Notes under the pieces: generated by a model
Database searches by the model: none
The model's input: the letters and a program-made list of their open reading frames with translations, nothing else
What the model was told of the DNA's origin: nothing
Program-made: the position numbers and the translations under genes
Assembly (NCBI GenBank): GCA_977017575.1
Contig: CDRNVI010000083.1
Span: 372,001-436,000 of the forward strand
Direction of reading: 5' to 3'
Length of the DNA: 64,000 bases
DNA from: Paramoeba atlantica
Taxonomy: Eukaryota; Protista; Discosea
Shown here: in pieces, positions 26,278 to 54,345 of the stretch
Layout: every line of letters starts with the position of its first letter
Position numbering within the stretch: the first letter of the stretch is position 1

Positions 26278-26304
26278 ATAAAAATCCTTTTATGACTAAA
26301 ATAT

Positions 26305-26707: not shown

Positions 26708-28064
26708 ACTCCACGAGCCAAAAGACTCGACAACCATGGCCGTGAACCCTAGTTGTGCTTCTTCTTTTTTTTTTTTTTTTTTTTTTTTAGGTCCTCGCCG
26801 GTGTTCTCTTCATCGAAGGTCCCCACTACCCAACATCATCTGGTATTTTTATCTTATGAGCCGTCATTACTGTTTTTTTTTGTGTTATCTTGTGTGCTTT
26901 TGGCCCGATTTCCGGAGTAACTTCAAAGATTCAGCATTGTAGACTTCCTACCCAATGTTCTTGGGCCATATATATAAACTTTTAGAACTTGATAAAATTG
27001 ATAACCATTGCACATACTCAGTTCCACTTTTTACCTATCTTTATCACCAATGTCTGTCCTAAGATGTTGCAACGTCTTGAGATTAAAACCAAATCATCAT
27101 CTAGCATTTTAGCTTATGTGCCGTCATCACTGTTTTTTTTTTGTGTGTTATCTTGTGTGCTTTTGGCACGATTTCCGGAGTAACTTCAAAGATTCAGCAT
27201 TGCAGACTTCCTACCCAATGTTCTTGGGCCATATATTGCCGCAGTTGCGAGAAGATAGTGTATGCGGAGAATTTTTCAATTTCCAATTGGAATGCTTCTC
27301 GAGTGTTTTCTACGTCTAGGCCTGCCCTATTTGCCAGTGTCTTGAGGAGTTCCTTAGTTTCCTTGTGAAGAAGACCACAATCTGTTACTGGTATGCAGCG
27401 AAAGTATTCTTGGTCCAATCCTTTTTCCTGCACATATTTCCGTTGCTTACGGTCTACCGCATTTTGGAGGAGGGCAACGCTTGTCTGCCGCTTGTAGCTC
27501 CCACAACAAGTGTGCACCACTGTCACATCGTAGAGTATCTCCCCAACATTTGGCCACATTATGGCCAGATCAGGGCCTGAACGAATTCTCCGAGCACGAC
27601 AAGGATGATGTTCTGCAGCTTCAGGTGAAATGGAACATTTGCACTTCGTGCAGAAGAAGGAAGAATGAAGGCGTGGTTCTATAGCGCAGGGTACTCCAGC
27701 TTTGGCACAAAGATCGGAAAGGTAGCGCACGATGTGGGAGTGCTTTCTCGTACAGTTCATCCCTGCACATCTTGAACACCCAGCTACATGTGAAATGATT
27801 CCATGTGGTGTTTCCGTGGCGCCGCATCCTGGACAAGTAATTTCATTCGGCGCACCTTGGAGTGCGATACCAAGCCGCATCATGAGTGTATATCGGAAGA
27901 GATACGGATTCACGTAATTATTTGTCGCTGCCAAGTGGAGATTTGCTTTTTTGATCGCTTCATAATGCCCGCAAATCTATCCTTTTGCATCAGTTCTGAA
28001 GCCAGTGTTTCATGTTCTAACTTAATCTGCTTTTTGAAATCAGTACGTGCGGCTTGGCTGGAGG
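26708..28064 (-). mobile_element. Composite insertion: family A 3' fragment + poly(A) + 57-nt D-type RLE fragment
   Basis: 8-bp TSD ATTAAGTT at 26700-26707 and 28065-28072. 26789-28060 matches A1; T-run 26765-26788; 26708-26764 encodes EAQLGFTAMVVESFGSWS. Confidence 0.87.
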
Positions 28065-30510
28065 ATTAAGTTCGTACGTACATATGTGTTGGACTTTCGC
28101 TGCAGCGCGTCATTCATGAGCTGTGTGCATTTCTTTCCACGATTAGACATTGAGAGTTCGTGAATAACTGTCAGATCATAGAAGACCGCACCCATGTTCC
28201 AATAGATCACGAGATCGGGGCCAGACCGACAAAGTTTTTTTCCTGCACAAGTCTTCTGATGTACCAACTGGTTTTCCGGACTGATTGTGGATCGGCAAGC
28301 GATGCACTTCCACGTAGAAAAGTTTCTAGGTTCCGTTTCACATGGGATGCCTGCTTTCACGCATAGACGATGTAAAAATCCGACAAGTGAGTTATGTTTC
28401 ACGGTCGTATTTATACCTGAACATTGAGCACAGCCTGGGATATGGGTGAGGGCGTTTCGGTTATTGAGGAGAATACCGCACCCTGGACACAATAGACTGG
28501 TAGGTAGATCTGGGTGTTGGGCATTTAGTCGTGGCATAATCGCGAGTTTGAAGAGATGGGAAGGGATGTACTTCGCGTTGGAAAGGATCCAGTCGCTGTT
28601 TCCTTTGAAGGATGTGGCTTGTAGAATGGGCTTAATGTCGGGATCCGTTTGCAACTCTTTCAATACTTCGACATGATGAATGCTGGTGGAAGCTTTTTCG
28701 TCCACTGGTATGACTTTCATTGTCGAGTTCTTAGGAATAGACGGGTGTGATGGCACCGCGTTGTCGATCCGAGCTGAAAAAGAGTTTCGGCGCTCAAGAA
28801 CCGAGTAGCGGGATGCCACATATGCCGTCTCCCTAAGGGGACTGCTCGCTGTCAAACCCATTCCTCCCTTCTTAACGGGTAATCGTACAATTTTCATTTG
28901 ATCAGGAGAGAGTGGACCAATCCAAGTCTCTACCACATTTTCAACCTCTTGATCGAATTGTGATGATGCTTTCTCTGTTGTTTCGGGCGGGTGGACACGA
29001 ATCAGGTATTGTTGACGAACATTGGCACATTTTGCTAAAAGAATCATCGATATATTATTGATGCCCATTCGTTTTAGCCGCCGAAAAGCTGTGACCTGCT
29101 TCTCTAGTTGACGCAAAAGTCGTTCACTTATTGTGTTGTTTTCTCCAATATACGCTCCGAGTACTTTGACCGCTTCGTCCTCCGACTTTACACCTTGGGT
29201 GCTCAGCGAATTCGGTATGGAATTTCCGGATTTTCCTCTGAACCAAACGCATTTTGCCTCGGCTAGTTTCACCTGTTTTTCTTCTAGGAGACCTTTGAGC
29301 CTAAAGAATGCTTTCTCCAGTTCGGTTGAATCTCGAGACACTAACGTTATATCGTCAATGTATGCATTTATTTCAATACCTGGAAATTCGGAGGCCAGTG
29401 TCTCGAGTATTGGTTGACAGAATACGCAAAAGTAAAGACTAGCCAGAGCGGACCCTTGCCGTACACCTGCTGAGCTCATTATAATGTCCGTCAGGCTGCC
29501 ATCGGAGCCATAAAATAAAAGTTCGGAAGCATTTGAATATTCGGCCGCAAAGAACCTTTGAAAGGGTTTCAGTGTAGCGAAAGCAAAAACGCACTTTGCA
29601 ATTTCCTCTCGTGAGGGTGAGTTGAATGCATTTTGCATATCCACAGTCAGGATTGAGTGTCCGTCAAGCCAGCGGTCCCGCAACTTGTGTACGATTCGTT
29701 CGCACCCCGCTTGAGAGAATACGCCTTGTTGCATTGGTGCAAAGAGGGGTTCCAGTGACTTTTCGTATCTTTGCAGCAGAATTATTCCAGCTAATTTGCT
29801 AAATATTTCTCCAATAGCTACTGGGCGTACTCCCCCGTTGGGCTTGTCGATGGCTACGAGTCTTGCCCGATTTAGACGCTGTAGAACTTGTCTAGATAGG
29901 AATCCGTTGATCAGATCGCTCATCATGTGACAAAGACTATTGCAACATGGCTCGTCGTCTATGAGAAGTCTAACGATGCTGTCGGTCGTACCTGTAGGCC
30001 CAGGGCTCACACCTTTTGACAGTCGTCTACTTGCACATCTTAATTCTTGTACGGCTATTCCTGCGATAATCGGTGCATCTTCCGGAACTTTGAAATTGCA
30101 GTTTTGTTCTGGATGAAGTGCACGTAGTTTTTGGACTTTTTCTTGATCAGTCAACGTGCTCTTCTGAAAAGAACAGTCCAAAATCCTTGAAGCCTTCGAT
30201 GTACAGTTTTCTAGCACCAAACGAGTGGCCCGTTTGATTGCTCGCTTGTCCTCATGAAAAAACTCGTCTTCTGGTTGATTGTGTTCAACTGTCTCTTGTT
30301 GTATGGGTCTTCGCCGCCGTTGTCTACTATTGGCTTGACGCACAGAAGCTAATGAAAGTTTCATTGCAGACAAAACTTTATTCCAAATTTGATTTCTTTG
30401 TACGTAGTCGCTTTCTGCATAGATGTGCATGATGTCCCTGTATATGGCAATCACACTGGAGATAAAATCAGGACTAATGGTTTTCGCGGTTGGAATTGGG
30501 AGATGGTCTA
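28065..30510 (-). mobile_element. Family B copy 2, central part (RT to RLE)
   Basis: Near-identical to 8320-10765 (DHLPIPT...YVRTNLI). Confidence 0.93.
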
Positions 30511-31539
30511 ATAATAATAATAATAACAAAAGACTATACACATGCAACTTTCAACGTACACTCTCCTTAGCGCACTGAAACATCTATCCACATCACGAAT
30601 AGGCCAAACCGCGGATTATGCGAATGGAGGTAGGAGACCTATCCTCTTTTGCAATTAGGAGAAAACGTGTACAAACGAGCACAAGCAAACCAGAACAATC
30701 TTACAATTAGCCATTTTCAGCTCAATATTTCACCATCGATATTCAACGCGGTACCAAGGGTTAAGCAGTGCGCAAGTTCTTGCCTTCATTGCCGCGTCAT
30801 ATGCCCGAAGAGCAACTCAGCGCCAACTTGTTCTCTGCTTGCCAAATAAACCACCGTATACTATCAATATTACGTACCCCACTCAGTGTTTTCGATGAGT
30901 ACGGATATTTAGCAATGAAATATACATAAATGCTCCAGAATATTATTAACGCGTTGATAAATAAATGTACCAAGAGGACATAACACTCCTGAAAATAAGC
31001 GTTCCAGATTAATGCGCAAAGTTATACACAGCAAATTTCGATTACATATAGCGGCTTTTCTTCACAAAAATGGGGGCATTCGTCAGTCTACCCCGTGATG
31101 TCTTGTACTGAGAAAACGTTACTGGATCCCCGGTATTAGCTTCTGGGTTGAGTGAACGAGCAATCCTGACTGTGCTGCCTTCTTCTGTATTTTTCAGTTT
31201 CCCTTTTTTCATATTCACTTTGTGTGGAGATTTTTCTTGGAGATCATGCTCCCTTTTTTGACCGTGATTAGATTTGTTTCCCTCCCTTTGCGTGTGAATG
31301 ACGCATGAAAAACGACGTGCAGCTGTTCTCTGTGCTTTGCGTGCTATTTCATCAGCTTTTTCATTGAAGGAATTCCCGCAGTGTGCCCGCACTTTAATAA
31401 CGTAGAGACTACTATCTGTACAACGCTCTTTAATTGCTCCTTGTATCTGCGTGAGTAGGTCAGCATTTGGCATGCCACCGTATCCAATGATTGAAAAACG
31501 AACCCTAACATTATGATACCAGTCCCATACATAATGAGA
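30509..31539 (-). mobile_element. APE-2 element 3' part: end of RNase H, 3' UTR, (TTA)6 tail
   Basis: Frame SHYVWDWYHNVR...MPNADLL...KVRAHCGNSFNEKADEIARK continues HTDSHYV at 41279-41300. (taa)n at 30509-30526. Confidence 0.85.
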
Positions 31540-34500
31540 TCAAGTTTTTTGTAAGATCAAGTTTTTTGTAAGATCAAGTTTTTTGTAAGATCAAGTTTTT
31601 TGTAAGATCAAGTTTTTTGTAAGATCAAGTTTTTTGTAAGATCAAGTTTTTTGTAAGATCAAGTTTTTTGTAAGATCAAGTTTTTTGTAAGATCAAGTTT
31701 TTTGTAAGATCAAGTTTTTTGTAAGATCAAGTTTTTTGTAAGATCAAGTTTTTTGTAAGATCAAGTTTTTTGTAAGATCAAGTTTTTTGTAAGATCAAGT
31801 TTTTTGTAAGATCAAGTTTTTTGTAAGATCAAGTTTTTTGTAAGATCAAGTTTTTTGTAAGATCAAGTTTTTTGTAAGATCAAGTTTTTTGTAAGATCAA
31901 GTTTTTTGTAAGATCAAGTTTTTTGTAAGATCAAGTTTTTTGTAAGATCAAGTTTTTTGTAAGATCAAGTTTTTTGTAAGATCAAGTTTTTTGTAAGATC
32001 AAGTTTTTTGTAAGATCAAGTTTTTTGTAAGATCAAGTTTTTTGTAAGATCAAGTTTTTTGTAAGATCAAGTTTTTTGTAAGATCAAGTTTTTTGTAAGA
32101 TCAAGTTTTTTGTAAGATCAAGTTTTTTGTAAGATCAAGTTTTTTGTAAGATCAAGTTTTTTGTAAGATCAAGTTTTTTGTAAGATCAAGTTTTTTGTAA
32201 GATCAAGTTTTTTGTAAGATCAAGTTTTTTGTAAGATCAAGTTTTTTGTAAGATCAAGTTTTTTGTAAGATCAAGTTTTTTGTAAGATCAAGTTTTTTGT
32301 AAGATCAAGTTTTTTGTAAGATCAAGTTTTTTGTAAGATCAAGTTTTTTGTAAGATCAAGTTTTTTGTAAGATCAAGTTTTTTGTAAGATCAAGTTTTTT
32401 GTAAGATCAAGTTTTTTGTAAGATCAAGTTTTTTGTAAGATCAAGTTTTTTGTAAGATCAAGTTTTTGTAAGATCAAGTTTTTTGTAAGATCAAGTTTTT
32501 TGTAAGATCAAGTTTTTTGTAAGATCAAGTTTTTTGTAAGATCAAGTTTTTTGTAAGATCAAGTTTTGTAAGATCAAGTTTTTTGTAAGATCAAGTTTTT
32601 TGTAAGATCAAGTTTTTTGTAAGATCAAGTTTTTTGTAAGATCAAGTTTTTTGTAAGATCAAGTTTTTTGTAAGATCAAGTTTTTTGTAAGATCAAGTTT
32701 TTTGTAAGATCAAGTTTTTTGTAAGATCAAGTTTTTTGTAAGATCAAGTTTTTTGTAAGATCAAGTTTTTTGTAAGATCAAGTTTTTTGTAAGATCAAGT
32801 TTTTTGTAAGATCAAGTTTTTTGTAAGATCAAGTTTTTTGTAAGATCAAGTTTTTTGTAAGATCAAGTTTTTTGTAAGATCAAGTTTTTTGTAAGATCAA
32901 GTTTTTTGTAAGATCAAGTTTTTTGTAAGATCAAGTTTTTTGTAAGATCAAGTTTTTTGTAAGATCAAGTTTTTTGTAAGATCAAGTTTTTTGTAAGATC
33001 AAGTTTTTTGTAAGATCAAGTTTTTTGTAAGATCAAGTTTTTTGTAAGATCAAGTTTTTTGTAAGGTCAAGTTTTTTGTAAGATCAAGTTTTTTGTAAGA
33101 TCAAGTTTTTTGTAAGATCAAGTTTTTTGTAAGATCAAGTTTTTTGTAAGATCAAGTTTTTTGTAAGATCAAGTTTTTTGTAAGATCAAGTTTTTTGTAA
33201 GATCAAGTTTTTTGTAAGATCAAGTTTTTTGTAAGATCAAGTTTTTTGTAAGATCAAGTTTTTTGTAAGATCAAGTTTTTTGTAAAGATCAAGTTTTTTG
33301 TAAGATCAAGTTTTTTGTAAGATCAAGTTTTTTGTAAGATCAAGTTTTTTGTAAGATCAAGTTTTTTGTAAGATCAAGTTTTTTGTAAGATCAAGTTTTT
33401 TGTAAGATCAAGTTTTTTGTAAGATCAAGTTTTTTGTAAGATCAAGTTTTTTGTAAGATCAAGTTTTTTGTAAGATCAAGTTTTTTGTAAGATCAAGTTT
33501 TTTGTAAGATCAAGTTTTTTGTAAGATCAAGTTTTTTGTAAGATCAAGTTTTTTGTAAGATCAAGTTTTTTGTAAGATCAAGTTTTTTGTAAGATCAAGT
33601 TTTTTGTAAGATCAAGTTTTTTGTAAGATCAAGTTTTTTGTAAGATCAAGTTTTTTGTAAGATCAAGTTTTTTGTAAGATCAAGTTTTTTGTAAGATCAA
33701 GTTTTTTGTAAGATCAAGTTTTTTGTAAGATCAAGTTTTTTGTAAGATCAAGTTTTTTGTAAGATCAAGTTTTTTGTAAGATCAAGTTTTTTGTAAGATC
33801 AAGTTTTTTGTAAGATCAAGTTTTTTGTAAGATCAAGTTTTTTGTAAGATCAAGTTTTTTGTAAGATCAAGTTTTTTGTAAGATCAAGTTTTTTGTAAGA
33901 TCAAGTTTTTTGTAAGATCAAGTTTTTTGTAAGATCAAGTTTTTTGTAAGATCAAGTTTTTTGTAAGATCAAGTTTTTTGTAAGATCAAGTTTTTTGTAA
34001 GATCAAGTTTTTTGTAAGATCAAGTTTTTTGTAAGATCAAGTTTTTTGTAAGATCAAGTTTTTTGTAAGATCAAGTTTTTTGTAAGATCAAGTTTTTTGT
34101 AAGATCAAGTTTTTTGTAAGATCAAGTTTTTTGTAAGATCAAGTTTTTTGTAAGATCAAGTTTTTTGTAAGATCAAGTTTTTTGTAAGATCAAGTTTTTT
34201 GTAAGATCAAGTTTTTTGTAAGATCAAGTTTTTTGTAAGATCAAGTTTTTTGTAAGATCAAGTTTTTTGTAAGATCAAGTTTTTTGTAAGATCAAGTTTT
34301 TTGTAAGATCAAGTTTTTTGTAAGATCAAGTTTTTTGTAAGATCAAGTTTTTTGTAAGATCAAGTTTTTTGTAAGATCAAGTTTTTTGTAAGATCAAGTT
34401 TTTTGTAAGATCAAGTTTTTTGTAAGATCAAGTTTTTTGTAAGATCAAGTTTTTTGTAAGATCAAGTTTTTTGTAAGATCAAGTTTTTTGTAAGATCAAG

Positions 34501-36978
34501 TTTTTTGTAAGATCAAGTTTTTTGTAAGATCAAGTTTTTTGTAAGATCAAGTTTTTTGTAAGATCAAGTTTTTTGTAAGATCAAGTTTTTTGTAAGATCA
34601 AGTTTTTTGTAAGATCAAGTTTTTTGTAAGATCAAGTTTTTTGTAAGATCAAGTTTTTTGTAAGATCAAGTTTTTTGTAAGATCAAGTTTTTTGTAAGAT
34701 CAAGTTTTTTGTAAGATCAAGTTTTTTGTAAGATCAAGTTTTTTGTAAGATCAAGTTTTTTGTAAGATCAAGTTTTTTGTAAGATCAAGTTTTTTGTAAG
34801 ATCAAGTTTTTTGTAAGATCAAGTTTTTTGTAAGATCAAGTTTTTTGTAAGATCAAGTTTTTTGTAAGATCAAGTTTTTTGTAAGATCAAGTTTTTTGTA
34901 AGATCAAGTTTTTTGTAAGATCAAGTTTTTTGTAAGATCAAGTTTTTTGTAAGATCAAGTTTTTTGTAAGATCAAGTTTTTTGTAAGATCAAGTTTTTTG
35001 TAAGATCAAGTTTTTTGTAAGATCAAGTTTTTTGTAAGATCAAGTTTTTTGTAAGATCAAGTTTTTTGTAAGATCAAGTTTTTTGTAAGATCAAGTTTTT
35101 TGTAAGATCAAGTTTTTTGTAAGATCAAGTTTTTTGTAAGATCAAGTTTTTTGTAAGATCAAGTTTTTTGTAAGATCAAGTTTTTTGTAAGATCAAGTTT
35201 TTTGTAAGATCAAGTTTTTTGTAAGATCAAGTTTTTTGTAAGATCAAGTTTTTTGTAAGATCAAGTTTTTTGTAAGATCAAGTTTTTTGTAAGATCAAGT
35301 TTTTTGTAAGATCAAGTTTTTTGTAAGATCAAGTTTTTTGTAAGATCAAGTTTTTTGTAAGATCAAGTTTTTTGTAAGATCAAGTTTTTTGTAAGATCAA
35401 GTTTTTTGTAAGATCAAGTTTTTTGTAAGATCAAGTTTTTTGTAAGATCAAGTTTTTTGTAAGATCAAGTTTTTTGTAAGATCAAGTTTTTTGTAAGATC
35501 AAGTTTTTTGTAAGATCAAGTTTTTTGTAAGATCAAGTTTTTTGTAAGATCAAGTTTTTTGTAAGATCAAGTTTTTTGTAAGATCAAGTTTTTTGTAAGA
35601 TCAAGTTTTTTGTAAGATCAAGTTTTTTGTAAGATCAAGTTTTTTGTAAGATCAAGTTTTTTGTAAGATCAAGTTTTTTGTAAGATCAAGTTTTTTGTAA
35701 GATCAAGTTTTTTGTAAGATCAAGTTTTTTGTAAGATCAAGTTTTTTGTAAGATCAAGTTTTTTGTAAGATCAAGTTTTTTGTAAGATCAAGTTTTTTGT
35801 AAGATCAAGTTTTTTGTAAGATCAAGTTTTTTGTAAGATCAAGTTTTTTGTAAGATCAAGTTTTTTGTAAGATCAAGTTTTTTGTAAGATCAAGTTTTTT
35901 GTAAGATCAAGTTTTTTGTAAGATCAAGTTTTTTGTAAGATCAAGTTTTTTGTAAGATCAAGTTTTTTGTAAGATCAAGTTTTTTGTAAGATCAAGTTTT
36001 TTGTAAGATCAAGTTTTTTGTAAGATCAAGTTTTTTGTAAGATCAAGTTTTTTGTAAGATCAAGTTTTTTGTAAGATCAAGTTTTTTGTAAGATCAAGTT
36101 TTTTGTAAGATCAAGTTTTTTCTAAGATCAAGTTTTTTGTAAGATCAAGTTTTTTGTAAGATCAAGTTTTTTGTAAGATCAAGTTTTTTGTAAGATGAAG
36201 TTTTTTGTAAGATCAAGTTTTTTGTAAGATCAAGTTTTTTGTAAGATCAAGTTTTTTGTAAGATCAAGTTTTTTGTAAGATCAAGTTTTTTGTAAGATCA
36301 AGTTTTTTGTAAGATCAAGTTTTTTGTAAGATCAAGTTTTTTGTAAGATCAAGTTTTTTGTAAGATCAAGTTTTTTGTAAGATCAAGTTTTTTGTAAGAT
36401 CAAGTTTTTTGTAAGATCAAGTTTTTTGTAAGATCAAGTTTTTTGTAAGATCAAGTTTTTTGTAAGATCAAGTTTTTTGTAAGATCAAGTTTTTTGTAAG
36501 ATCAAGTTTTTTGTAAGATCAAGTTTTTTGTAAGATCAAGTTTTTTGTAAGATCAAGTTTTTTGTAAGATCAAGTTTTTTGTAAGATCAAGTTTTTTGTA
36601 AGATCAAGTTTTTTGTAAGATCAAGTTTTTTGTAAAGATCAAGTTTTTTGTAAAGATCAAGTTTTTTGTAAAGATCAAGTTTTTTGTAAAGATCAAGTTT
36701 TTTGTAAAGATCAAGTTTTTTGTAAAGATCAAGTTTTTTGTAAAGATCAAGTTTTTTGTAAAGATCAAGTTTTTTGTAAAGATCAAGTTTTTTGTAAAGA
36801 TCAAGTTTTTTGTAAAGATCAAGTTTTTTGTAAAGATCAAGTTTTTTGTAAAGATCAAGTTTTTTGTAAAGATCAAGTTTTTTGTAAAGATCAAGTTTTT
36901 TGTAAAGATCAAGTTTTTTGTAAAGATCAAGTTTTTTGTAAAGATCAAGTTTTTTGTAAAGATCAAGTTTTTTGTAAA
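31540..36978. repeat. Tandem array of 17-bp AAGATCAAGTTTTTTGT, ~320 units; the ~19 units next to APE-1 are an 18-bp variant with an extra A
   Basis: Directly visible and highly homogeneous. Rare variants are mostly length changes in the T or A runs. Confidence 0.98.
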
Positions 36979-39900
36979 TTTATTTACAAAATGGCGGATG
37001 CTTCCGGTGCACGCATGCCCACTGCTATTATGAATCTTCTTGCGTGTTCCAAGCTTGATCGGGGGATTCTTTTCCGTCCTGCGAAGGGTGGAACGGAATC
37101 TGCTAAACTCCGCGCGAGGTCGTTAGGACACATTATGCGACTGCTTTGTTTAGGCGCTAAGCTTGCGGTGGTTTGGAGGTACGCGGATTCATCGAACTAC
37201 AGTGTGTGGGAGGGGGTAGTAGAGAGTTGGGTGCCGAGCCGCTGGCGTGTTCGCTACGCTCAGTGTTCGCGATTTACGCTTCCGTTCCCTCCATGTAGTC
37301 CTCACATCGTCCTCTGTGCTGCTCGGGTTTGTGCGCCTAAGCGTAGACGTCGTTTCAAAAAGCGCTCTCGCAAATACAGGGCACAGTCTGGCAAACGTGC
37401 TCTCCGTGACTTGGTGGGCCCTGGGGGCCCCGCTGTGAAGAGAATGTTGAGTGTGGGAACCTTGAACGTGACTACTCTTAAGCTGAAAGGTGAAGACGAG
37501 TTTAGCCTACGAAAGTGCGGACACCTTTGCGAAGTACTTGCCTTCATTGGTCTGAAGGGAATAAATATTCTTGGCCTGCAGGAAACGCGATTCAGATTCC
37601 CATCTTCTGAAAAGTCGGATGTCCTTCACCGCAAAGTACAATATCGGAACGCAGAGTTTCACTTGAACCTCATTCCAGCGCGCGCAAAGGATGCATACAA
37701 TGGAATGGGATTCGTCAGCACTTTTCCCTTGTCCAAGGTATCTAAAATCAGTGAAAGGATTATGTCGGGTGAATTTGAGATGGAGGAAGGAGTCGCAACA
37801 GTTATTAACGTATATTCTCCTACACGCGATTCTAAGGACGTCGAGGTTACGGAGTTCTACGGAGAACTCGAACGTTGCTGCTTGAGAATAAGGGAAAGCA
37901 ACCCGCGTCGCCCATTAATTGTGCTGGGCGACTTTAATGCACCTTTGACACATATAACAAATAAGGATCTAGATCCCATTGCGGCCGCCCGTCTTAAAGG
38001 ACTTTCTTGTTCTATAGACTGTAAGTCTGCGCACAGTCTTTGTCCAAGTAGTCGGAAATGGACATGCGAATTACCAAACAAAGCTTTAAGGCAGTTAGAT
38101 CACATATTTATTTGTAGCAGATTTGCATCGGCAGTTCAACGACACAAAGTGATCAAGGCACCCATTCCTACTACTCACTGTTGTGTTATAGCCAGAATTA
38201 AAATTAAATGGCGAGTCAGTGATCCCAAAACGAATACGAATCAGCTCTCGTGGATTTCTCTTCGAAATAGTGAGGATAGGAAGAATTTCATCAATAAAGT
38301 TCACGACCAATATCGAGCAACCTCGAACTCTTGTCGACCATGGGGCGCTCTCGCACAATATATGAAAAATGCTGTAAAAACTTTCAAAAAACCGACGAAA
38401 CGAAATTTGAACAAAGAAGCTGTAAAGGACTCAAAAATACATGATTTGCGCGGTTTATACCACAAGAGCAGAAACAAAAAGGTGTTCAACGCTCTCGTAA
38501 AGGAGAATAAAGAGGAAGTTGAAGAGATTATTTCTGACGAATGCTTGGAGATTGAAAAACAGCTTCGTAAAAACCATTCAAACCCATGGAGAACGATTCG
38601 AAAGATATGCGGGCAATATCGTGATACCTTTAGCACGAACGGAAGCTCACGAAATGATAAACTTAACGAAATTCGATCGTACTTCATGAAATTTAGTGGC
38701 GCTGATGATGGAGATCCAAATCTTAGCTTTGAACTGCTGCCGCCGCCGTTAGTACCAATATCTGATGCAGCATTTACAAGCGAGGAGTTAAGCACATCTT
38801 TAGAACATTTCAGAAGAGGAAAAACACCGGGAAGTGACGGAATACCAATGGAAGCCCTTCAAGCTATAGCGGCCCACCCTGATCTGAGATCGCATCTCCT
38901 GAATATAATCAACCAGGTACACGAAACGGGAGTCACAGAGGAAGCCTGGCGCAACACTCTTCAAATACCCATCCCAAAGAAAGGAGACCTCACTAACATT
39001 GAGAATTGGCGGCCTATATGCGTAGTAAATAGCGTAGTTAAGCTCATGAATCATATGATACTCTCCCGCATTAGACCCAACATTGAAAAGTCTCTTCGGG
39101 GTAACCAGTATGGGTTTCGACCTAACCGAGCGACTTCTGGAGCTCAGATTATCATGAACGAAATAAAAACCAAAGCATTCAGAGGACAAGGCCTTTCTGT
39201 AGCTTTTATAGACTTTGCTAAAGCATTTCCTTCGGTATCGTTCGCTGCTATTAAAGCTAGTTTGCATGCATTTCGAGTACGTCCATGTCTTTCTAAGATG
39301 ATAATGTCTATATACGATGAGCTGAAAGGCACTGTACGAACTTCTATTGGAATCACGAAACCTTTCCCTATCACTACAGGAATACTCCAAGGTGATGTAT
39401 TGGCGCCTTATCTGTTCGTTATGGTGTTAGATAGAATTCTCAATAAAGCACTTGATGGAAAATCAGACGGGGTTCTTCTCAGCTCTAGGGGTACAAGAAA
39501 GCGGGGTCTTCATGAAAAGCGCCTGAGTGACATTGAGTATGCGGACGATATAGCGTTATTTAGTGACACGAAGAGTGGTTTGACAAATATGATAGACAAT
39601 GTAGCTGAAGAGTCACGCAAAGCTAATCTGAAACTAGCCGTCGGAGCAAACAAGACAGCCTGGTTAACTTTTGGTAAATCTCAAATGAGCAGCGAGAGCC
39701 TGAACAGCAAATTCTCGGGGATGATTCCGAAAGTTACGTCTTACAAACACTTAGGGCATCGGCAGGAAAATGATTTTACATCTACAGTTAAAGATCGTTT
39801 GAAACTAGCTTGGGGATCTCTCTTTCGAATGAATGGTATTTGGTCTTCACCACTTAGCCCGGAGACTAAGCTGCGCCTCTACGATTCAATAGTATATCCG

Positions 39901-41278
39901 GTGCTAAACTTTGGGACAGGTGCACTTTCTATTTCAAAATCCATGCTCCGAAGAATTGACGTTGAAGTTAACAACATGAGAAGAATAGTTTGCCAATGCA
40001 ACAGATTAGATGAATACGGAATGAGCTACCCGAATGCTTCTCTGTATCTTGAAACTGAGCGCTTTTCTACTATACACAAGGTTCAGAGGGCCAAGCTCGT
40101 CGGGCACATGCTGAGGCACTCCAGTGATTTTCAAGAGCTTGTACAGTGGAAACAACGCCCGCATGCACGCAATTTATCTCCAAGCGAGGCTTGCTTCAAG
40201 GATCTTAACATTACACTGGAAGAGGCATTGGTATTTGCGTCAAACCGTGAACACTGGTATCGTCTGACAGAAAAATTGCGACGTGAACTTGAACCGCTCA
40301 TAGAATACGAAAAAATTGGGTCAGCAAAGTGGAAAACTGCTCTTGCCAAAGCTAAAAAACAAAAAAGTCCTTCAGAATTACAGTTCGTTGAAGAATCAAA
40401 TGTGCCTTTTCCAGCCTATAAAGCCATGCAAATATATACCGATGGCTCTGTTCTGCCGATGAAAAATACGAAAGAGATTCGAAGTGGCATAGGTATCGTA
40501 GTTCTAAAACCACGATGCGAACCCTCACGGATATCCATACCATTAGAATCAGACACTATTGAGCGAGTAGAGATCTTAGCTTTTCAGCATGCCCTTCTCC
40601 AACTGCCGTCAAAACCATGCGCTTGTCTATTTCATACAGACTCTTACTATCTATGGGACTTCTTTCACAATCTTCGATATCGGCGGCGAATCGTTGGTTA
40701 CAAGGGGGTTTTAAATGGAGATTTGTTCTCCCAGTTAGACGGAAAATTACGGTCCTTAAAACATGATTTGTACTCAATATATATGTGCAAAGTCAAGGGT
40801 CACTCAGGAAATAAATGGAACGACGAGGCAGATGGGTTAGCACTGATTGCAGCGCGAAAAGTTCCTCGACCGCCTGAGCAGAAAAAGAGAAAAACAAGTA
40901 ATGATTCCAACGCATCACAAATCGACAAATCCTTGGAAAAGCTGATAAAACATAGAACCTTGGAAAAGGGAAAGACGAAAACCAATCCAGCACCCAAGCG
41001 TGGCGCCGAGGCTAAAGTCACGCTGTGCGGGAAGATTGCGAAAACTGGTGGAAAGAGGGCGCCTTCATAGTAAGAGTTGGGCGGAAGATGTGTTTCCACC
41101 AGCAGGTTCGGAATACCCTGAGGAAGAGTTCAGGAAGATAAAGGAAAAGTATTGTGTGAAAGTAAAATAGTAGGCACTATTAAACTCTGAACTGGAAGGC
41201 GAGGGAGTATAAGTTCGGGGGGAAAACATTTAACATTCTAACTGACATATGTCGGTCTTTTGGATTGGATTGGATTGG
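36979..41278 (+). mobile_element. APE-1: full-ORF APE-RT-RNase H non-LTR retrotransposon with (TTGGA)4 tail
   Basis: 1359-aa ORF, ~190-bp 3' UTR, tail ttggattggattggattggat. The 13-bp TSD ATACATAATGAGA (31527-31539 and 41279-41291) encloses both element and array. Confidence 0.93.
36991..41070 (+). CDS. Polyprotein: N-terminal beta-rich domain, AP-like endonuclease, RT, RNase H
   Basis: APE: LNVTTL, LGLQETR, NVYSPT, VLGDFNA, LDHIF. RT: GKTPGSDGI, NWRPI, QYGFRP, IDFAKAFPSV, GILQGDVLAPYLF, YADD. RNase H: IYTDGS, HTDS, KVKGHSGNKWNDEAD. Confidence 0.94.
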   Translation: MADASGARMPTAIMNLLACSKLDRGILFRPAKGGTESAKLRARSLGHIMRLLCLGAKLAVVWRYADSSNYSVWEGVVESWVPSRWRVRYAQCSRFTLPFPPCSPHIVLCAARVCAPKRRRRFKKRSRKYRAQSGKRALRDLVGPGGPAVKRMLSVGTLNVTTLKLKGEDEFSLRKCGHLCEVLAFIGLKGINILGLQETRFRFPSSEKSDVLHRKVQYRNAEFHLNLIPARAKDAYNGMGFVSTFPLSKVSKISERIMSGEFEMEEGVATVINVYSPTRDSKDVEVTEFYGELERCCLRIRESNPRRPLIVLGDFNAPLTHITNKDLDPIAAARLKGLSCSIDCKSAHSLCPSSRKWTCELPNKALRQLDHIFICSRFASAVQRHKVIKAPIPTTHCCVIARIKIKWRVSDPKTNTNQLSWISLRNSEDRKNFINKVHDQYRATSNSCRPWGALAQYMKNAVKTFKKPTKRNLNKEAVKDSKIHDLRGLYHKSRNKKVFNALVKENKEEVEEIISDECLEIEKQLRKNHSNPWRTIRKICGQYRDTFSTNGSSRNDKLNEIRSYFMKFSGADDGDPNLSFELLPPPLVPISDAAFTSEELSTSLEHFRRGKTPGSDGIPMEALQAIAAHPDLRSHLLNIINQVHETGVTEEAWRNTLQIPIPKKGDLTNIENWRPICVVNSVVKLMNHMILSRIRPNIEKSLRGNQYGFRPNRATSGAQIIMNEIKTKAFRGQGLSVAFIDFAKAFPSVSFAAIKASLHAFRVRPCLSKMIMSIYDELKGTVRTSIGITKPFPITTGILQGDVLAPYLFVMVLDRILNKALDGKSDGVLLSSRGTRKRGLHEKRLSDIEYADDIALFSDTKSGLTNMIDNVAEESRKANLKLAVGANKTAWLTFGKSQMSSESLNSKFSGMIPKVTSYKHLGHRQENDFTSTVKDRLKLAWGSLFRMNGIWSSPLSPETKLRLYDSIVYPVLNFGTGALSISKSMLRRIDVEVNNMRRIVCQCNRLDEYGMSYPNASLYLETERFSTIHKVQRAKLVGHMLRHSSDFQELVQWKQRPHARNLSPSEACFKDLNITLEEALVFASNREHWYRLTEKLRRELEPLIEYEKIGSAKWKTALAKAKKQKSPSELQFVEESNVPFPAYKAMQIYTDGSVLPMKNTKEIRSGIGIVVLKPRCEPSRISIPLESDTIERVEILAFQHALLQLPSKPCACLFHTDSYYLWDFFHNLRYRRRIVGYKGVLNGDLFSQLDGKLRSLKHDLYSIYMCKVKGHSGNKWNDEADGLALIAARKVPRPPEQKKRKTSNDSNASQIDKSLEKLIKHRTLEKGKTKTNPAPKRGAEAKVTLCGKIAKTGGKRAPS

Positions 41279-43118
41279 ATACATAATGAGAATCAGTATG
41301 TATAACTGTGTTCCTCGTAGAAGACGAAGCTGCCTGAATGCCTAAAAGAAAGGAGCGAAGTTCAGCCCGATCCGGCGAAGTGCATTCCGGTGGTAAAACG
41401 TGTTGTCTGGTTCTTACACCATTTGAATTAACAATAACTATCCCCGAACCCGCGGCTGGTTTTCCTGCTTCTGAACTGACAGCCCCATCTACGTATATGT
41501 GTTCGGAATCAGCTGAGAGAGGAGAATGGTCCGTGCCTTCTTCAATTCCTTCGAGTACTTTGTAGGTGGTAGTATCTAAGTCCTGGCATACCTTCTTCCA
41601 GGATCTAGAGCCGAAAACCATGTAGGATTTGTGAGATTCAAGATATTCACGCAAAAATTTAACTCTCGACGCCCACCAATCCCGATCTCCCGCTAGGACA
41701 TTGAGATCTTCGACATCTAGTTCCATGTCTTCAGCACATGCCTCTGATAGAGTGGGACGATATTTCTTTCCTGTTGCTTTGCGCCATAGCATTACCGATT
41801 TGAAGGGATTATTGCCGCGGATCAGGTGTCCTAGCATTTGAACTCGGAGGACTCGACATGCGTTAGAAAGTCGCATTCTGTTCCCATATAGTGCATCACA
41901 TGGTGTACCTCTTGTACCATCCCAAGTACGAACCCCGATCGCTAGTCTTCTCATTCGGTTCACTTCACAGTCAATTAAATCAGCGTCTTTTTTTATTAGG
42001 GAAAAGTTTCCACAGCCATACAGCAATAAAGGTGAAACCAGAGATTCGAATAAGTGAAATTTTGTGACAAGCGTGAGGCCTGATTTCCATAATGACTGTA
42101 GGCGATGTGTTGCAGCCCACGCTAAGTTAATTCGGTCTTCAAAGTTTACAATGACACCCTTATTAGTAATTTTCAACCCCAAGTATCGATATTCGGTGAT
42201 TCGAGGCACCAACCCCCCATTCGTTAGAATCAAGTCTCCTTGTGCGTCATTCACTTGACCTACTGTCATCCACGCAGTTTTATTTACACCAATGTTGAGA
42301 CGTAAGTTGACTTTCGCAGCTGTTTGTTCCAGTCTTTCCATAACGCGATTCAAATTAGTAAGAGAGGGACATATGAGCACTAAATCATCCGCGTATGCTA
42401 AATAATTTAGACATTGCGCAGGCTTTCCTTGTCTTTTTGTGCCCGCCCTTCGCAAGATAAGTCCGAACTCATTTTCCTTATACACTTCAGCCATGACTCG
42501 ATCCAGAACCATGAGGAATAGGACAGGGGCCAAAACATCACCTTGAAGTGTGCCACACTGGATCGGAAACGTATCAGTAACTCCGCTTTTGCATCGTACA
42601 ACTGCTTCTGTTTTTTCATACATAGAAATTATCATGCTGCTGAGATGCTGCGGGATGTGAAAGGCTTCCAGTGCAGCACGAATGGAGAAAAAGCTGACTG
42701 AAGGAAATGCCTGACGGAAATCCACGAAGCCTAGCGCAACACCAGGATTCTCACGAGACGCTTTCTGGCACAACTCAATGAGGGTTGCTTGTGCTCCCGT
42801 TGTTGCTCTATTGGGTCGGAATCCGTATTGACAATCACTTAATTGAGCATCCACTGTAGGAAGAATTCGATTTAGTATCATACGGTTCATGAGTTTTGCA
42901 GCGTGCACTATTAGACATATTGGTCTCCAATTGTTCATGTTGCCTAAGTCGCCTTTTTTCGGAACTGGGACTTGGATAACTCGTTTCCATGTCTGTGGCG
43001 CTCTTCCGCTCTCACGAACCATATTAATTAAATGTAGAAGAATAGATTGTATGAACGGATCGCTGTTCAGTACTCGTAAGGCTTCAATTGGAATCGAGTC
43101 AATGCCTGGTGCTTTACC
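41279..43118 (-). mobile_element. APE-2 central part (RT and start of RNase H)
   Basis: GKAPGIDSIP, NWRPI, VDFRQAFPSV, GTLQGDVLAPVLF, YADD, IYVDGA, HTDSHYV. Confidence 0.9.
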
Positions 43119-43912
43119 GTGCAATGTACAGGTTTCAACGCCACAGCGAAGCACAACATGTTGACCAAGTTTCTATATGATCTTTGCATGAAAGCTGGTA
43201 TTCCATGCGAAAGAGAGCCGCGTTCTTTTAGCACGTGGAGTTGTCTAACATGCGGAAATACAGTCGACTACAACAATCAGCATCTCCACCACAAAACATG
43301 CGGAGGACGGCAGTTTCATCGCTCAGGCCCGGATCTTGCGATCTACTGGAACAGTGGCGTGGTGTTCTACGACCTAACTGTGGTGCACGAGCTCGCGCCT
43401 TCCCATCGGAATAAAAAGTGTTCCCAACTCGTGCGAGAAGCTATACAGCGGAAAAATGAAACATATGTCAATAGTGGCATGATTCCGGCGGAAGCTTTTG
43501 AGTGCCTTCCTGTCTTGTCCTGCGGGTCTTTACATAAGAGCACACGGGGCCTAATTAAATCACTGACGGATGTCTGCCTGTTGGATACCCAAAAAACCGA
43601 ACAGGCATTCAAGTTGCTACTCCAAGAGCTGAACGGATCCGAAGTATACGCACAGCTCCGACATTTTTTGGAGCCTCAAGACTATCAGAAAAGCACTATT
43701 CTTTAAGAAATCAAAAGTACAGAAAAGATACAAATTGGAATTATAAAGTCTGCGAAGAGATAGACAAAAATCAGTACTAAAAGTTTATGTAAACTTGAGA
43801 AAGTAAAAAAAAAAAAAAGTATATAAGTTTACGATAAGAAATTTAGGAGACTTTAAAAAAAGAGCGCAAGCTCGTTAGTATTGCCAGGATAAAAAAAAAA
43901 AAAAAAAAAAAA
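43119..43912 (+). mobile_element. CRE-like 3' fragment G (RLE + UTR + poly(A)) inserted in APE-2
   Basis: C..CTGFNATAKHN...SGPDLAIYW...YDLTV; A-runs ~43806 and 43891-43912. A 5-bp TSD TTACC (43114-43118 and 43913-43917) splits DMATG/KAPG of APE-2. Confidence 0.85.
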
Positions 43913-45776
43913 TTACCAGTTGCCATATCTTTAAGAGCAGTCGTCAATTCATTGAGATCAAACGGTCCATCAGATATAGGGATAAACGACTTTGGCGCTT
44001 CCGCAAATTTGATCTTGTTGTCTACCTCCTTTAGTTGCACAGTATTCTGAAAGTGTAATCGCACATTACATAATTGTTCGCTTTTTGTTTTTCCTGGCGG
44101 TCTGAGGCGTGATGAAGTGTGCCCAGTCATCATTTTAACATGTCTCCAAGAAGAACGTTTGTATCTTTGAAAGTTTTGTTGTAGAGACAGGCATTCTTGA
44201 GTGATATTTTCATTCACGGTGATGCTATGTTCTTTTACTAGAGAATCGAACCTCTGCGGACTTTGAGACGTACGGAAAATGTCACGGATTCGCAACTGTG
44301 TAGTAGTTTCATCGTTTGAAGCAAACATGTTTATGTTTTCCTCCTTCGTTGTTTCAGCAGCCATGATAATTGCTTTTTCCAATTTATCCCACAAAATATC
44401 ACTTGGAAATATCACAGGCATTTCGGTTGACATTTTCTGGTTTGGCTCATTTCGTCTTCTTTTCATCCCAACTATCTCCGCATGTTCGGTGTAGTTCTCT
44501 TTCACACGGCGTATGAAGTCCATACATATTTGTGGACCCTTTAACTGATACCACGGTAATCGCAAGCTACCGTCATTTACTGAAGCTTTCCAACGAAACT
44601 TAGTTTTTACTGTTACTATTTGATGTCGAGTCGGCACCGGGGGTTGGAGAACTCTGTGGCCATGTAAGGTAGTGACGAAACGTTTGTTGACAAGAATATG
44701 GTCTAGTTGTTTTACAGTTCCATTTTGAAAAGTATAAGTCCACTTCTTTCTGCTTGGGCAGGATGTATGTGCCGCGCGAGCTCCAAGCTCAGACAGTAAA
44801 TTGGTAAGCCGATGTTGTGCCTTATTTTTACGCATTATTCGCTGACACTTATCTGTCAGTGGCGCATTAAGATCCCCCAGAACAAGTTTTATTTTCGCAT
44901 TACTAAGATTCCATGCATCACGCAGATCATTGCAAAATTTCTCCTTTACGTCATCTTTTGCCACCGCCGTGGGGGCATAAACATTGAATAGCACACCGTG
45001 GAATTTTGGTAAGTCTAGAGTAACCTGTTGGATCCGATCACTGATTCGCGACACAAGAGCAGGCTCAAATAGGCTTAGAATCATGAGTCCACCGTAACCT
45101 TTGATAGCGCCTTGAATATAAACATGAAATACGAACTTTCCATGACGAATTGTCTGATGTGCAATGTTTTGAATGATATCGGTTTGTACACGAGTTTCCT
45201 GAAGGCAACAGAGGGCAAGGCCTCGCTCGACCATGTACGACATAATTTCCCGTAGTCGTGTCGATTTGCGAAGGGAGAAATAATCAGTTCCCTTTAGTTT
45301 CAGGGTAGTGACGTTTAGAGTTGCAAGATGTAGCGTCTTGTTCGTGGCAGTGGGGTTAGATTCCTCGACCGCCGGGGAGCCATTCCGACGGGGAAGTCGC
45401 GCAGAACGGTGCTTCCTACATTTCTTCTTACGGGGGGGTGCCACGCGGCCCGCACAGATCGCTACTCGTGGGTCTATAGGGGGAAAAGGAAACGATACTC
45501 CAGGACAACAGTCATAGCGAATACGCCATAGACCATTTTTGGCCCGAAATTTCGCAGTCCCTTGCCACATCTTTAGCCTTTGAGCAAACGACCAGCGCCA
45601 GACCACAGCGACACGAGACCCCGCACGAATCGTGTTGGACATACTGGTTACCGCACGATCACGGAGTTTTGCTACGCCAAACTTTGACTTTGATGGCCAA
45701 AAATTGACGCCCCGACCTAACCTGGACCGACCAATAAGAGCAACCGGGTCAGAACACCGCTTTCTCTCATTGACCG
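43913..45776 (-). mobile_element. APE-2 5' part (N-terminal domain and AP endonuclease)
   Basis: RGVNFWP...AKLR...RVAVVWRW, LNVTTL, CLQETR, NVYAPT, VLGDLNA, LDHIL; homologous to APE-1. Confidence 0.9.
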
Positions 45777-48046
45777 TGGCTCGTCGTCTATGAGAAGTCT
45801 AACGATGCTGTCGGTCGTACCTGTAGGCCCAGGGCTCACACCTTTTGCCAGTCGTCTACTTGCACATCTTAATTCTTGTACGGCTATTCCTGCGATAATC
45901 GGTGCATCTTCCGGAACTTTGAAATTGCAGTTTTGTTCTGGATGAAGTGCACGTAGTTTTTGGACTTTTTCTTGATCAGTCAACGTGCTCTTCTGAAAAG
46001 AACAGTCCAAAATCCTTGAAGCCTTCGATGTACAGTTTTCTAGCACCAAACGAGTGGCCCGTTTGATTGCTCGCTTGTCCTCATGAAAAAACTCGTCTTC
46101 TGGTTGATTGTGTTCAACTGTCTCTTGTTGTATGGGTCTTCGCCGCCGTTGTCTACTATTGGCTTGACGCACAGAAGCTAATGAAAGTTTCATTGCAGAC
46201 AAAACTTTATTCCAAATTTGATTTCTTTGTACGTAGTCGCTTTCTGCATAGATGTGCATGATGTCCCTGTATATGGCAATCACACTGGAGATAAAATCAG
46301 GACTAATGGTTTTCGCGGTTGGAATTGGGAGATGGTCTACGTCTGCAGCTCCTGTGTCCAGCTTAAGCGCTCTGGCCTTTTTAACATGTGTTTCTTCGCG
46401 GGTCTCAATAGGAAGGTTCTCGTCAATGGCTGGAGGAGCTCTGTACCAACGGATCTGATATACACGGATATTTTCTTGCGGAGGAAGAAAACCTGGAAAA
46501 CTTTCTTCTGCACGATGGCCGAACAGACCTTTATAGCTCAAATGTAGTTTCGACGCCCCGGTCCGATTCGCGGATCGTGTTACGGTTCCTTCGGAGATGT
46601 TCAAGGCGGTTTGTTTATCGAATGTCCACGCCACTGTGCATTTGGTTCCTTTTTTTATTGAAGAACAAGACTTCTGTATGCGCTCGAAAGGAATGGGGAA
46701 TTCGGTGTCTGGATTTATCGATTTTATGATGCCACCGATGTGGTTGTCTTGTTCCGGATTTCCTTCGCTATAAAGTATGCTGATGACTTGATTTGTTGTT
46801 TCGGTTGGTTTGTCCTTTTCTTGTGTGTCTGGCGTGATGCAGTCGTAGAACTCGGTGTTACTTCCATACTCCTTGGTTTTGGGGCCCGGAGTCGTGCTAA
46901 TTACCTGTATTTCGCTCGATGTGTCAGGTCGGAAACCTTCGTCGCCGTTGGGCGCAATTTCGCCGTACTGAATCGGTTCGTTGTTTTGTACGCGTCCGTT
47001 TTCCTGGACGTTCTTTGTACTCTTGTTGTGCTCGTTTTCCTTTTGGATGATAGCATCCTGCAGAACTTTAGCCTTCTTACGGTAACTGTCCATGGCAACG
47101 GCCGACGGATTTAACGGTCGTAAAACGAGTTCATCCAGAGTAGTGGGATCTTTTGGTGGAGGGGTGGCCGCCTGAGCGTACGTTGGTTCCTTTCTCCAGT
47201 TCGTAAATGCTGTGTTCCGAGCGGTGTTCGTTCTTATTTTGATGCATCCTTCTGGGTGACGAATGGTTGGGCTCTCGTCTTGCGACACTTTGTCAGCTCT
47301 TGTCTGAAGAAGGTTGAGTTGTTTGTTTCGCCGATTGAAGAAATTTGAAGACAGCAGTGCGTTCTTAATTGTGACTTTGCAGTCACTTTTCGGCAGTGGG
47401 GTCGGCGATCGACGCATCGACGGAGGAGGAGATTGTGGACACTCAGATGGCGTTGATGGTGGTGATGGCGGCGGTAGTGGCGGCGGAAGTGGCGGTGAAG
47501 TAAGTGACCGCGATGCGGCGGGGACGGGCGATGGAAGAGACGGAGTTTCAGTGGACAAAGTCGTGGGTGGTGAGGGCGGCGGGGGCGGCGGGGGCGGCGA
47601 AGGAGAAGCGCTCGGTTCGGACGGAGCCTCAGGCGGTTTCTCCTCAATTGTTTTCTTCCTGCGACGGGTCGGAGGTAGAGGCTGTACGACGGGAGCTACT
47701 CCCGTTTCTTTCGCCCGGCTCCGCGTGAACATGCCCATGAAAGTGAGAAAGTAATAGAAAATAAATCAACTCAAATCAAATCAACTTCCAATGACCGATC
47801 CACACAAATTGTGCAAATAAATCAACTTCCAATGACCGATCCACACAAATTGTGCAACAACTCCATGGATTTCGTCGAACAATTCCCACGTTGACGTGTC
47901 CGAAGGCACTCTACTTCCTCGAAATCCTCCACGCACTCCGATCGTCGCTTGCGGCGCCCCAGCGCCCAGGTACATAAAAGTGTAGGTTGTCAGAATAAGA
48001 AAAAGAAAATCAACAAGGTACAGAAACTGTATCTTTATCGTTAAAG
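45777..48046 (-). mobile_element. Family B copy 2, 5' part with SL, ~270-nt 5' UTR and Pro-rich N-terminus (ATG 47738)
   Basis: SL 48011-48046, ORF MGMFTRS...PPPPPP...LLIDDEP, near-identical to B1 over the shared region. ~40-bp tandem duplication in the 5' UTR (~47778-47857). Confidence 0.92.
48011..48046 (-). other. Spliced-leader exon sequence (36 nt)
   Basis: Identical to the copy at 25896-25931 and followed by attttcttttt. Confidence 0.87.
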
Positions 48047-54299: not shown

Positions 54300-54345
54300 A
54301 ATTATTTTCCTTATTTCACTTTTCTCCAGGTACGCGGTTCCTTCT

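Follow-up and report, generated by a model that had tools for sequence, protein, structure and literature searches.

Reverse transcription is prone to truncation, and how long interspersed nuclear elements (LINEs) nevertheless keep and rebuild their 5' ends is an open question that a locus in the genome of Paramoeba atlantica raises. The locus lies in a 64-kb window, meaning here the whole stretch of DNA analyzed (positions 372,001 to 436,000 of contig CDRNVI010000083.1, referred to below as C83, from assembly GCA_977017575.1, which comprises 45.7 Mb in 248 contigs), in which one LINE, APE-1, has inserted into another, APE-2, with a 5.4-kb array of 17–18-bp tandem units directly upstream of APE-1. 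Was this array the target of the insertion or part of the inserted DNA, and how did it reach its length? The array is a component of the inserted DNA and not a pre-existing target, and we are very nearly certain that it represents the LINE's own hypervariable 5' head, a family-wide feature carried within the insertion. As for its length, there is about an even chance that the 5.4-kb array is such a head that was partly inherited through RNA and grew at its distal tip.

The insertion is bounded by a target-site duplication (TSD), the 13-mer ATACATAATGAGA, of which the 64-kb window contains exactly two copies, at 31527–31539 and 41279–41291, and which was matched in 0 of 100 shuffles of the sequence. 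From one side of the interrupted host element to the other, the locus is arranged as follows.

31042–31526, minus strand: host LINE APE-2, C-terminal half of the RNase H domain and end of the open reading frame (ORF), cut off by the insertion
31527–31539, plus strand: 5' copy of the TSD, ATACATAATGAGA, single in uninterrupted paralogous host copies
31537–36617, plus strand: distal head, about 299 units, nearly all of them the 17-mer GATCAAGTTTTTTGTAA, with six singleton variants, reaching the TSD (Tandem Repeats Finder and unit census)
36618–36978, plus strand: element-proximal head, 19 18-mers and the last unit, abutting the leader (unit census)
36979–36990, plus strand: leader TTTATTTACAAA, 12 nt from the last unit to the ATG (read from the sequence)
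36991–41070, plus strand: the single, intact LINE ORF of 1359 aa, with AP-endonuclease (APE), reverse transcriptase (RT) and RNase H domains (Pfam)
41071–41259, plus strand: 3' untranslated region, conserved in other copies
41260–41279, plus strand: (TTGGA)4 tail, its final A overlapping the TSD, identical in six full copies
41279–41291, plus strand: 3' copy of the TSD (two-copy match)
41292–43154, minus strand: host LINE APE-2, RT and N-terminal half of the RNase H domain (ORFs and Pfam)

At the 5' junction, the final AGA of the TSD also matches the first repeat unit, creating a microhomology of 3 nt. In silico removal of positions 31540–41291 joins the two minus-strand host ORFs into one ORF of 792 aa, reading ...HTDSHYVWDWYHN... 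across the junction, and reunites the host's Pfam RNase_H match, which the insertion splits into profile positions 4–76 on one side and 100–139 on the other. Moreover, an empty site was present in Logan contigs from three public runs, in which the sequence of 31212–31539 is followed by ATCAGTATGTATAACTG, which in the window comes directly after the second copy of the TSD. These contigs come from paralogous copies of the host element, of which there are roughly eight, and no array is present there. Because the array sits inside the TSD, it must have arrived with the element. A preliminary description of the window had already proposed that the TSD brackets the array, APE-1 and its tail, that excision restores the RNase H frame of APE-2, and that the array consequently belongs to the inserted DNA; all three proposals hold, and the last of them gains further from the arrayless paralogous site and from the four additional TSD-bounded loci described below.

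The inserted element is a 4.3-kb LINE of the APE–RT–RNase H type. Pfam matches on its 1359-aa ORF comprise Exo_endo_phos (3.3e-08), RVT_1 (4.4e-28) and RNase_H (3.2e-15), atlas neighbours of the protein have an identical domain architecture, and the family displays the traits of APE-type LINEs, namely APE and RT domains, TSDs, a simple-repeat 3' tail and 5'-truncated copies. A lookup of contigs encoding this ORF returned no record. Each internal unit of the array repeats the leader's initial 17 nt (ATCAAGTTTTTTGTAAA) and adds one G; at the boundary between the last unit and the leader, a T (or A) stands in place of this junction G, as it does in four subfamilies. The 12-nt leader TTTATTTACAAA can pair with TTTTGTAAA of the last unit in a weak 9-bp hairpin that is not significant (z-score about -1). 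A conserved last-unit/leader hairpin was predicted in APE-1, L012, L014 and L022, and we discarded it as a family feature, given the z of about -1 in APE-1 and its absence from L010 and two other families. An Rfam search of window positions 26–46 kb returned no ribozyme and no other RNA family, even at E<=1.

Tandem Repeats Finder reported the array as a single tract at 31537–36977, with a period of 17, 319.1 copies and 99% matches, its length (5.4 kb, 319 units) being an assembly value, as short-read contigs collapse the array. Our unit census counted 291 exact 17-mers and 20 exact 18-mers, and 19 of the latter form a single block adjoining the element, at 36618–36959. The remaining six variants are all singletons, comprising three base substitutions and three changes of homopolymer length. 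The preliminary description thus correctly recognized about 19 proximal units of 18 bp followed distally by 17-bp units, and was about half right in attributing the variants mostly to homopolymer slips. The 18-mer, which is the form present in all short heads, is the ancestral, proximal form, and the 17-mer is the derived, distal one.

Across the genome, we found nine 5' ends with 98–100% identity to the window LINE, and all nine are directly preceded by its unit, with unit numbers as listed here by contig.

C87: 2 units, no tail found
C40: 4 units, no TSD found
C4: 9 units, no tail found
C41: 16 units, TSD of 10 bp
C43: 44 units, TSD of 10 bp
C16: 54 units, TSD of 12 bp
C63: at least 291 units, the array ending the contig, TSD not visible
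C83 (the window copy): 319 units, TSD of 13 bp
C18: 439 units spanning 7.7 kb, TSD of 10 bp

In all five TSD-bounded copies (the window copy, C18, C16, C43 and C41), the array lies inside the duplication. No array was found on the 3' side of any copy for which a tail was identified; the tail is followed by non-repeat flanking sequence, which equals the TSD at the five loci. At these five loci, the check that the preliminary description had suggested, namely whether genomic APE-1 copies carry arrays only at 5' junctions inside TSDs, came out in its favour. We found approximately 16–17 APE-1 3' ends at 98% identity or more as against nine 5' ends; therefore, ordinary 5'-truncated copies also exist (on C109, C47, C19, C48, C17 and C30), and one truncated copy without a head, L020, was found.

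The heads vary in a limited number of ways. Variants of unit length sit at the unit junction, which reads GTAAAG in the 18-mer, GTAAG in the 17-mer, and GTAAGG or GTAGG in C18, and changes in the length of the T-run are rare singletons. Short heads consist almost purely of 18-mers. Read from the element outward, the window head contains 19 18-mers and then about 300 17-mers up to the TSD, and the C18 head about 12 18-mers and then mostly 17-mers up to the TSD; the C63 head contains 133 18-mers, 99 17-mers, 29 18-mers, 18 17-mers and so onward, its distal edge being hidden by the end of the contig. The distal end of the head falls in a constant phase of the unit, starting with GATCAAG, ATCAAG or TCAAG, with slightly aberrant initial bases in two of the copies. 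Judging by sequence, the RNA of the element probably starts inside the leader unit, at (G)ATCAAG, and the constant 5' phase would be compatible with a transcription start in each unit, a putative promoter.

Apart from these nine copies, an orphan head is present on contig C9 (509811–509957; L071:4811–4957), where 8.6 17-mer units come after an A13 run and give way to unrelated sequence, no LINE body being attached; it includes a AGATGAAG variant that also occurs as a singleton in the window array. Separately, on two contigs (C48:306127–313984 and C17:66722–74579), APE-1 3' ends occur in pairs with a spacing of exactly 7,262 bp, each end lacking the initial 32 nt of the 629-nt query, and this spacing suggests a large tandem repeat of element pieces.

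Heads of the same kind extend to diverged relatives. Each of the subfamilies, at 78, 76, 71 and 67% identity, uses units of its own, and the period of 18 bp and the 5' phase are kept throughout: ...GATCGAG... at 78%, heterogeneous units at 76%, ...GATCAACC...GTAAA at 71% and ...GATCAACC...ATTAA at 67%, with CGAG, CAACC and TTATTAAG among the variants. Subfamily copies carry from a single unit (L014, L016–19) to more than 80, and one subfamily comprises the single-unit copies L014 and L016–19 alongside the 33-unit copy L015; L016–19 are four segmental duplicates, all of which still have a single unit. At L012 and L013, the heads have higher-order patterns and are collinear over about 25 heterogeneous units, and the bodies differ by 2.3%. 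Given subfamily-specific units in a constant 5' phase, at least part of the head must be carried in the RNA.

These observations led us to a model in which a part of the head would be inherited from the parent copy via RNA and the head would then be extended at its distal (5') tip. If the RNA contains at least two units, the complementary DNA (cDNA), on reaching the 5' end of its template, could un-pair, re-pair one unit inward, and recopy the terminal unit together with its junction; alternatively, the enzyme could jump back onto a 5'-terminal piece of RNA, so that the terminal unit is recopied repeatedly. By either route, the junction type at the tip of the RNA, be it 18-mer or 17-mer, would be multiplied into long, pure blocks, and unequal exchange or replication slippage might later reshuffle the inserted array. 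Inheritance through RNA is favoured by ordered unit patterns common to several loci: C16 and C18 share the order of one 17-mer and eight 18-mers, C16 and C41 have in common a T7 variant, the offset of which is similar, and collinearity links the heads of L012 and L013, provided that these are independent insertions. Three observations favour tip growth. The 18-mers are proximal and the 17-mers lie toward the TSD in both the window copy and C18; the distal blocks are pure and the six variants in the window are all singletons, as expected from one constant template; and single-unit copies coexist with a 33-unit copy, whereas DNA slippage cannot begin from one unit. The location of the unit-length variants at the junction, and the lack of the junction G before the leader in four subfamilies, also speak for growth at the tip. 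We consider reiterative reverse transcription the best single account of the long pure distal blocks, and the probability that it is the main mechanism of growth falls just short of even. The preliminary description had envisaged a short template copied hundreds of times onto the cDNA end; the polarity and purity of the arrays fit that part of the proposal, but the head is a module of the family, carried at least in part by the RNA, and hundreds of rounds of copying during this one insertion would be no more than a candidate event.

Several findings weigh against tip growth, and most of them would be expected if, instead, a head of a few units had arrived with the insertion and had then expanded by replication slippage and unequal sister-chromatid exchange, in the manner of a minisatellite, an alternative that the preliminary description had also named. 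The C18 array contains two copies, spaced about 175 units from each other, of a motif of about 40 units, as well as recurring islands of three 18-mers plus a GG junction; such an internal higher-order duplication is the usual signature of unequal exchange and fits either exchange at the DNA level or long jump-backs. The alternating blocks of C63 would require several rounds of growth, and the old heads at L012 and L013, with their higher-order patterns, have persisted and diverged without regeneration. In addition, at window positions 31640–31700, the circular k-mer contigs of the pure 17-mer and the pure 18-mer differ strongly in relative depth among four public samples of the same organism (17:18 ratios of about 2.6, 1.1, 4.2 and 12), and depth scaled to the approximately 8-copy host element suggests several-fold fewer units than the assembly contains, the depth of short-read contigs not being a copy number according to the tool's own warning; these differences may reflect library bias, differences in head length between strains or cultures, or instability at the DNA level. 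Unequal crossing-over is also one of the two models for the monomers of mouse L1 (PMC6454616). Nevertheless, exchange without polarity should leave 18-mers at both edges of an array, and the distal edge in the window copy and in C18 is pure 17-mer; the six variants among the 319 units in the window have not spread into clusters; the bodies of C63 and C16 differ by only one or two substitutions, yet their heads contain at least 291 and 54 units, respectively; and L016–19 all remained single-unit through segmental duplication. Expansion after insertion is thus a serious but doubtful explanation. The age of the insertion offers no guidance here, as the 19 private coding changes of the window copy comprise 11 synonymous and 8 non-synonymous ones, which makes the insertion undatable against the array and indicates a selected source lineage rather than decay after insertion. 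In view of this 11:8 ratio, we dropped the notion that the array is younger than the insertion, for which the contrast between 21–23 private substitutions in the 4.3-kb body and three in the 5.4-kb array had seemed to speak. A more radical form of reiterative copying would build the whole array in a single insertion, with RT, after run-off at the capped end, recopying the terminal 17 nt plus a cap-derived or untemplated G for hundreds of units before the cDNA joins the target, in the manner of telomerase. The unit length would then correspond to a spacing of about 18 nt between the polymerase and RNase H sites that leaves a reusable 5' piece of RNA, and the self-renewing end would protect the element against erosion. 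A polymerase-to-RNase H spacing that could act as such a ruler is known from retroviral enzymes. Polarity, pure blocks and singletons fit such copying, but the duplications in C18 and the alternation in C63 are incompatible with a single round, and the restriction-like endonuclease (RLE)-type elements that also have 18-bp arrays lack an RNase H domain in Pfam, counter to an RNase H ruler; we consider this version unlikely.

A head could also be long simply because its source was at least as long and was transcribed whole and faithfully copied, with shorter heads arising by 5' truncation or by transcription starts in inner units. The ordered unit patterns common to several loci, the constant 5' phase, which fits a start site per unit, and the existence of several full-length 4.3-kb copies, which demonstrates that the RT can copy the whole element, are all in keeping with such full inheritance. 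However, the proximal zone of 18-mers differs from copy to copy (19, about 12, 133, more than 54 and more than 44 units), leaving no single master array, and a process that can only shorten heads explains neither their origin nor the takeover of subfamilies by new unit variants, so that full inheritance as the whole explanation has a low probability. Tip growth, expansion after insertion and full inheritance are not mutually exclusive. Very unlikely, in our estimation, is an artefact of assembly in which the array is real and its length of 319 units is inflated or misjudged: the k-mer depth, on the scale of the 8-copy host element, would imply roughly 80–215 17-mer units genome-wide against about 820 assembled, and the long array of C63 terminates a contig, but contig depth is not a copy number, the position-specific singletons and higher-order patterns are unlike a collapsed or inflated consensus, and two of the long arrays are contig-internal, with unique flanks and TSDs. 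Finally, the LINE might have inserted at the edge of a pre-existing tandem repeat, as a different 18-bp array elsewhere in the window, which flanks three endonuclease-less (RLE-type) LINEs on both sides, could suggest; for APE-1 we rejected this reading, to which we assign practically no probability, given that the TSD encloses the array at five loci, that the paralogous empty site is arrayless, and that no array follows any 3' tail.

Whichever process prevails, these heads lend themselves to studying how a LINE end is maintained, with units of only 17–18 bp, exact TSD bounds, near-identical young copies with 2 to more than 430 units, and a genome of 45.7 Mb, and the 18-mer and 17-mer junctions provide a built-in marker of the order of growth. 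Heads made by RT would mean that an ordinary LINE enzyme has a new activity resembling that of telomerase, whereas heads growing as DNA would rank among the fastest-evolving minisatellites of mobile elements and would be a source of new satellites in the genome.

The closest known kind of structure is the monomer array of mouse L1Md elements. The A, Tf and Gf types carry variable numbers of monomers, with up to 50 reported, and extension is thought to occur upstream by an unclear mechanism, for which priming of second-strand synthesis on cDNA and unequal crossing-over are the models (PMC6454616). As in mouse, APE-1 has tandem 5' units inside the insertion, in varying number and of types that track the subfamily. 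The mouse units, however, are about 200 bp long compared with 17–18 bp here, where copies reach at least 439 units; the mouse monomers are joined to ORF1 by a tether, whereas APE-1 has a single ORF and its last unit ends 12 nt from the ATG; and the present host, unlike the mouse, transcribes polycistronically and trans-splices.

Other precedents concern the enzymology. Microsatellite tails at the 3' ends of LINEs arise by RT slippage, for example, (TGTAA)n in eel UnaL2, and APE-1, with its (TTGGA)4 tail, resembles such elements in that a LINE RT would reiterate a short terminal template. That slippage accompanies the onset of reverse transcription at the 3' end and adds a few short units, whereas the heads described here are located at the end where the cDNA finishes and comprise hundreds of units of 17–18 nt. 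The R2 RT performs end-to-end template jumping, and R1 and R2 insertions vary at the 5' junction, where extra untemplated bases occur. These events likewise take place at the RNA's 5' end, and the extra bases bear comparison with the junction G and with the GG variants, but what such events are known to yield is a single jump or a short duplication of the target, not hundreds of units. With telomerase and Penelope-like elements, the heads would share reiterative copying of a short template with realignment and polar growth of the array; they differ in that an ordinary APE–RT–RNase H ORF would do the copying, with the element's own 5' end as template, and in that the arrays are internal and TSD-bounded. 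Site-specific LINEs, which have the target repeat on both sides and a constant 3' junction within it, present a different picture from APE-1.

The trypanosomatid L1Tc/ingi elements have a 5' hallmark that serves as the Pr77 promoter and as a hepatitis delta virus (HDV)-like ribozyme (PMC1874656, PMC3185411). Both systems are found in kinetoplastid-type hosts and have the domain order APE–RT–RNase H, and in both, the 5' end would be a special module defining the start of an unspliced transcript. With the L1Tc/ingi clade as such, the agreement lies in this domain order alone. APE-1 is devoid of the 77-nt hallmark, its 5' untranslated region (UTR) consisting of the unit or units and 12 nt, and positions 26000–46000 contain no Rfam match at E<=1 that would indicate an HDV-like ribozyme, a search that did not include the Pr77 sequence itself. 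A limited literature search found no published description of LINEs or kinetoplastid elements with arrays of short leaders at the 5' end, and a related search returned only the work on L1Tc/ingi Pr77.

The trans-splicing context offers a further comparison. The spliced leader of the host, the sequence of which we read from retrocopies, is of the kinetoplastid type and ends in ...CAGTTTCTGTAC(C/T)TTGTTG. The APE-1 unit resembles its core (TAAAGATACAGTTT versus TAAAGATCAAGTTT) in a local alignment of 14 nt that is marginal (p about 0.015), and the similarity was not significant in four other families. No spliced leader was found at the distal end of the heads, which abut the TSD. Dinoflagellate retrogenes have relict spliced-leader arrays, that is, tandem short units at their 5' ends. 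The likeness to APE-1 extends to leader-like tandem 5' units in a retroposed sequence of a trans-splicing organism; the APE-1 units, however, lack the 3' end of the spliced leader, and hundreds of rounds of recycling are implausible. We therefore abandoned the reading as a relict spliced-leader array, no leader being found distally, and kept a spliced-leader origin of the unit as no more than a lead, the similarity being marginal and absent in sister families. Alongside the LINEs of this genome that start with the spliced leader, the APE-1 heads constitute a second route to a 5' end in a trans-splicing host.

DNA copies of the spliced leader (AACTTTAACGATAAAGATACAGTTTCTGTACCTTGTTG, sometimes 5'-truncated) occur at 4081–4112 (minus strand) and 54264–54301 (plus strand) in the window, as well as in L072 and L073 around positions 1480–1520. 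They lie directly upstream of LINE 5' UTRs or of other transcripts, usually after an A-run of 8–20 bases, and are retrocopies of trans-spliced RNAs.

Arrays with an 18-bp period are by no means confined to APE-1; this period dominates the tandem repeats of the DNA examined, accounting for 39 of about 110 Tandem Repeats Finder rows. A related core, AAGAYC...TTTTTGTA, recurs in the 18-bp arrays of several further LINE-like families in the window. Another arrangement involves a second array with an unrelated unit, (GTTTATTACCCCCTTTTT)n, read on the minus strand, with 49, 9 and 5 units at 4113–5001, 6842–7004 and 14120–14211, respectively. It lies between three RT-only LINEs of the RLE type on the same strand, a (592–4053), b (5281–6990) and c (8093–14231), of which b is 5'-truncated within the RT domain. 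GGCATGAGGGCTAATGC forms the end of a as well as of b, and after it the (GTTTATTACCCCCTTTTT)n array begins in equal phase; a 44-bp stretch comprising the 17-mer GGCATGAGGGCTAATGC and 1.5 units is repeated at 5026–4983 and 101–58. Such an arrangement suggests either that the elements inserted site-specifically into an 18-bp satellite or that the TSD is long and SLACS-like. Arrays on such 5'-truncated window LINEs were set aside as proof of addition at the cDNA end, as element b is flanked on both sides and has the same 3' junction as a.

A comparable case is the RLE-type LINE ORF at 61213–62826, which has three GAAGACCTTTGTTTTTTT units at 62786–62844 (minus strand), 11 nt upstream of its ATG. 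This ORF aligns to its relatives from mid-RT onward only, so that it is 5'-truncated or internally deleted, yet headed, and the element follows immediately on the poly(A) of a copy upstream. We likewise did not retain it as proof of cDNA-end addition, as it may be internally deleted instead.

Two more arrays belong to other families. On contig C41, 1.1 kb upstream of the APE-1 head listed above, 14 ACCACTTTTTGTATTAAG units lie directly upstream of an ATG (L063:1437–1691, minus strand), and the ORF that follows contains internal repeats of about 120 bp. At 58994–59616 in the window, a 35-unit 18-bp array of CCTTTCTTTTGTTAAGAC ends in a perfect 19-bp hairpin, at the junction 59585–59650, where the array is followed at once by the unit in inverted orientation (RNA fold of -30.5 kcal/mol, z = -7.4). 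No LINE ORF follows this array immediately, and it may represent a non-autonomous element.

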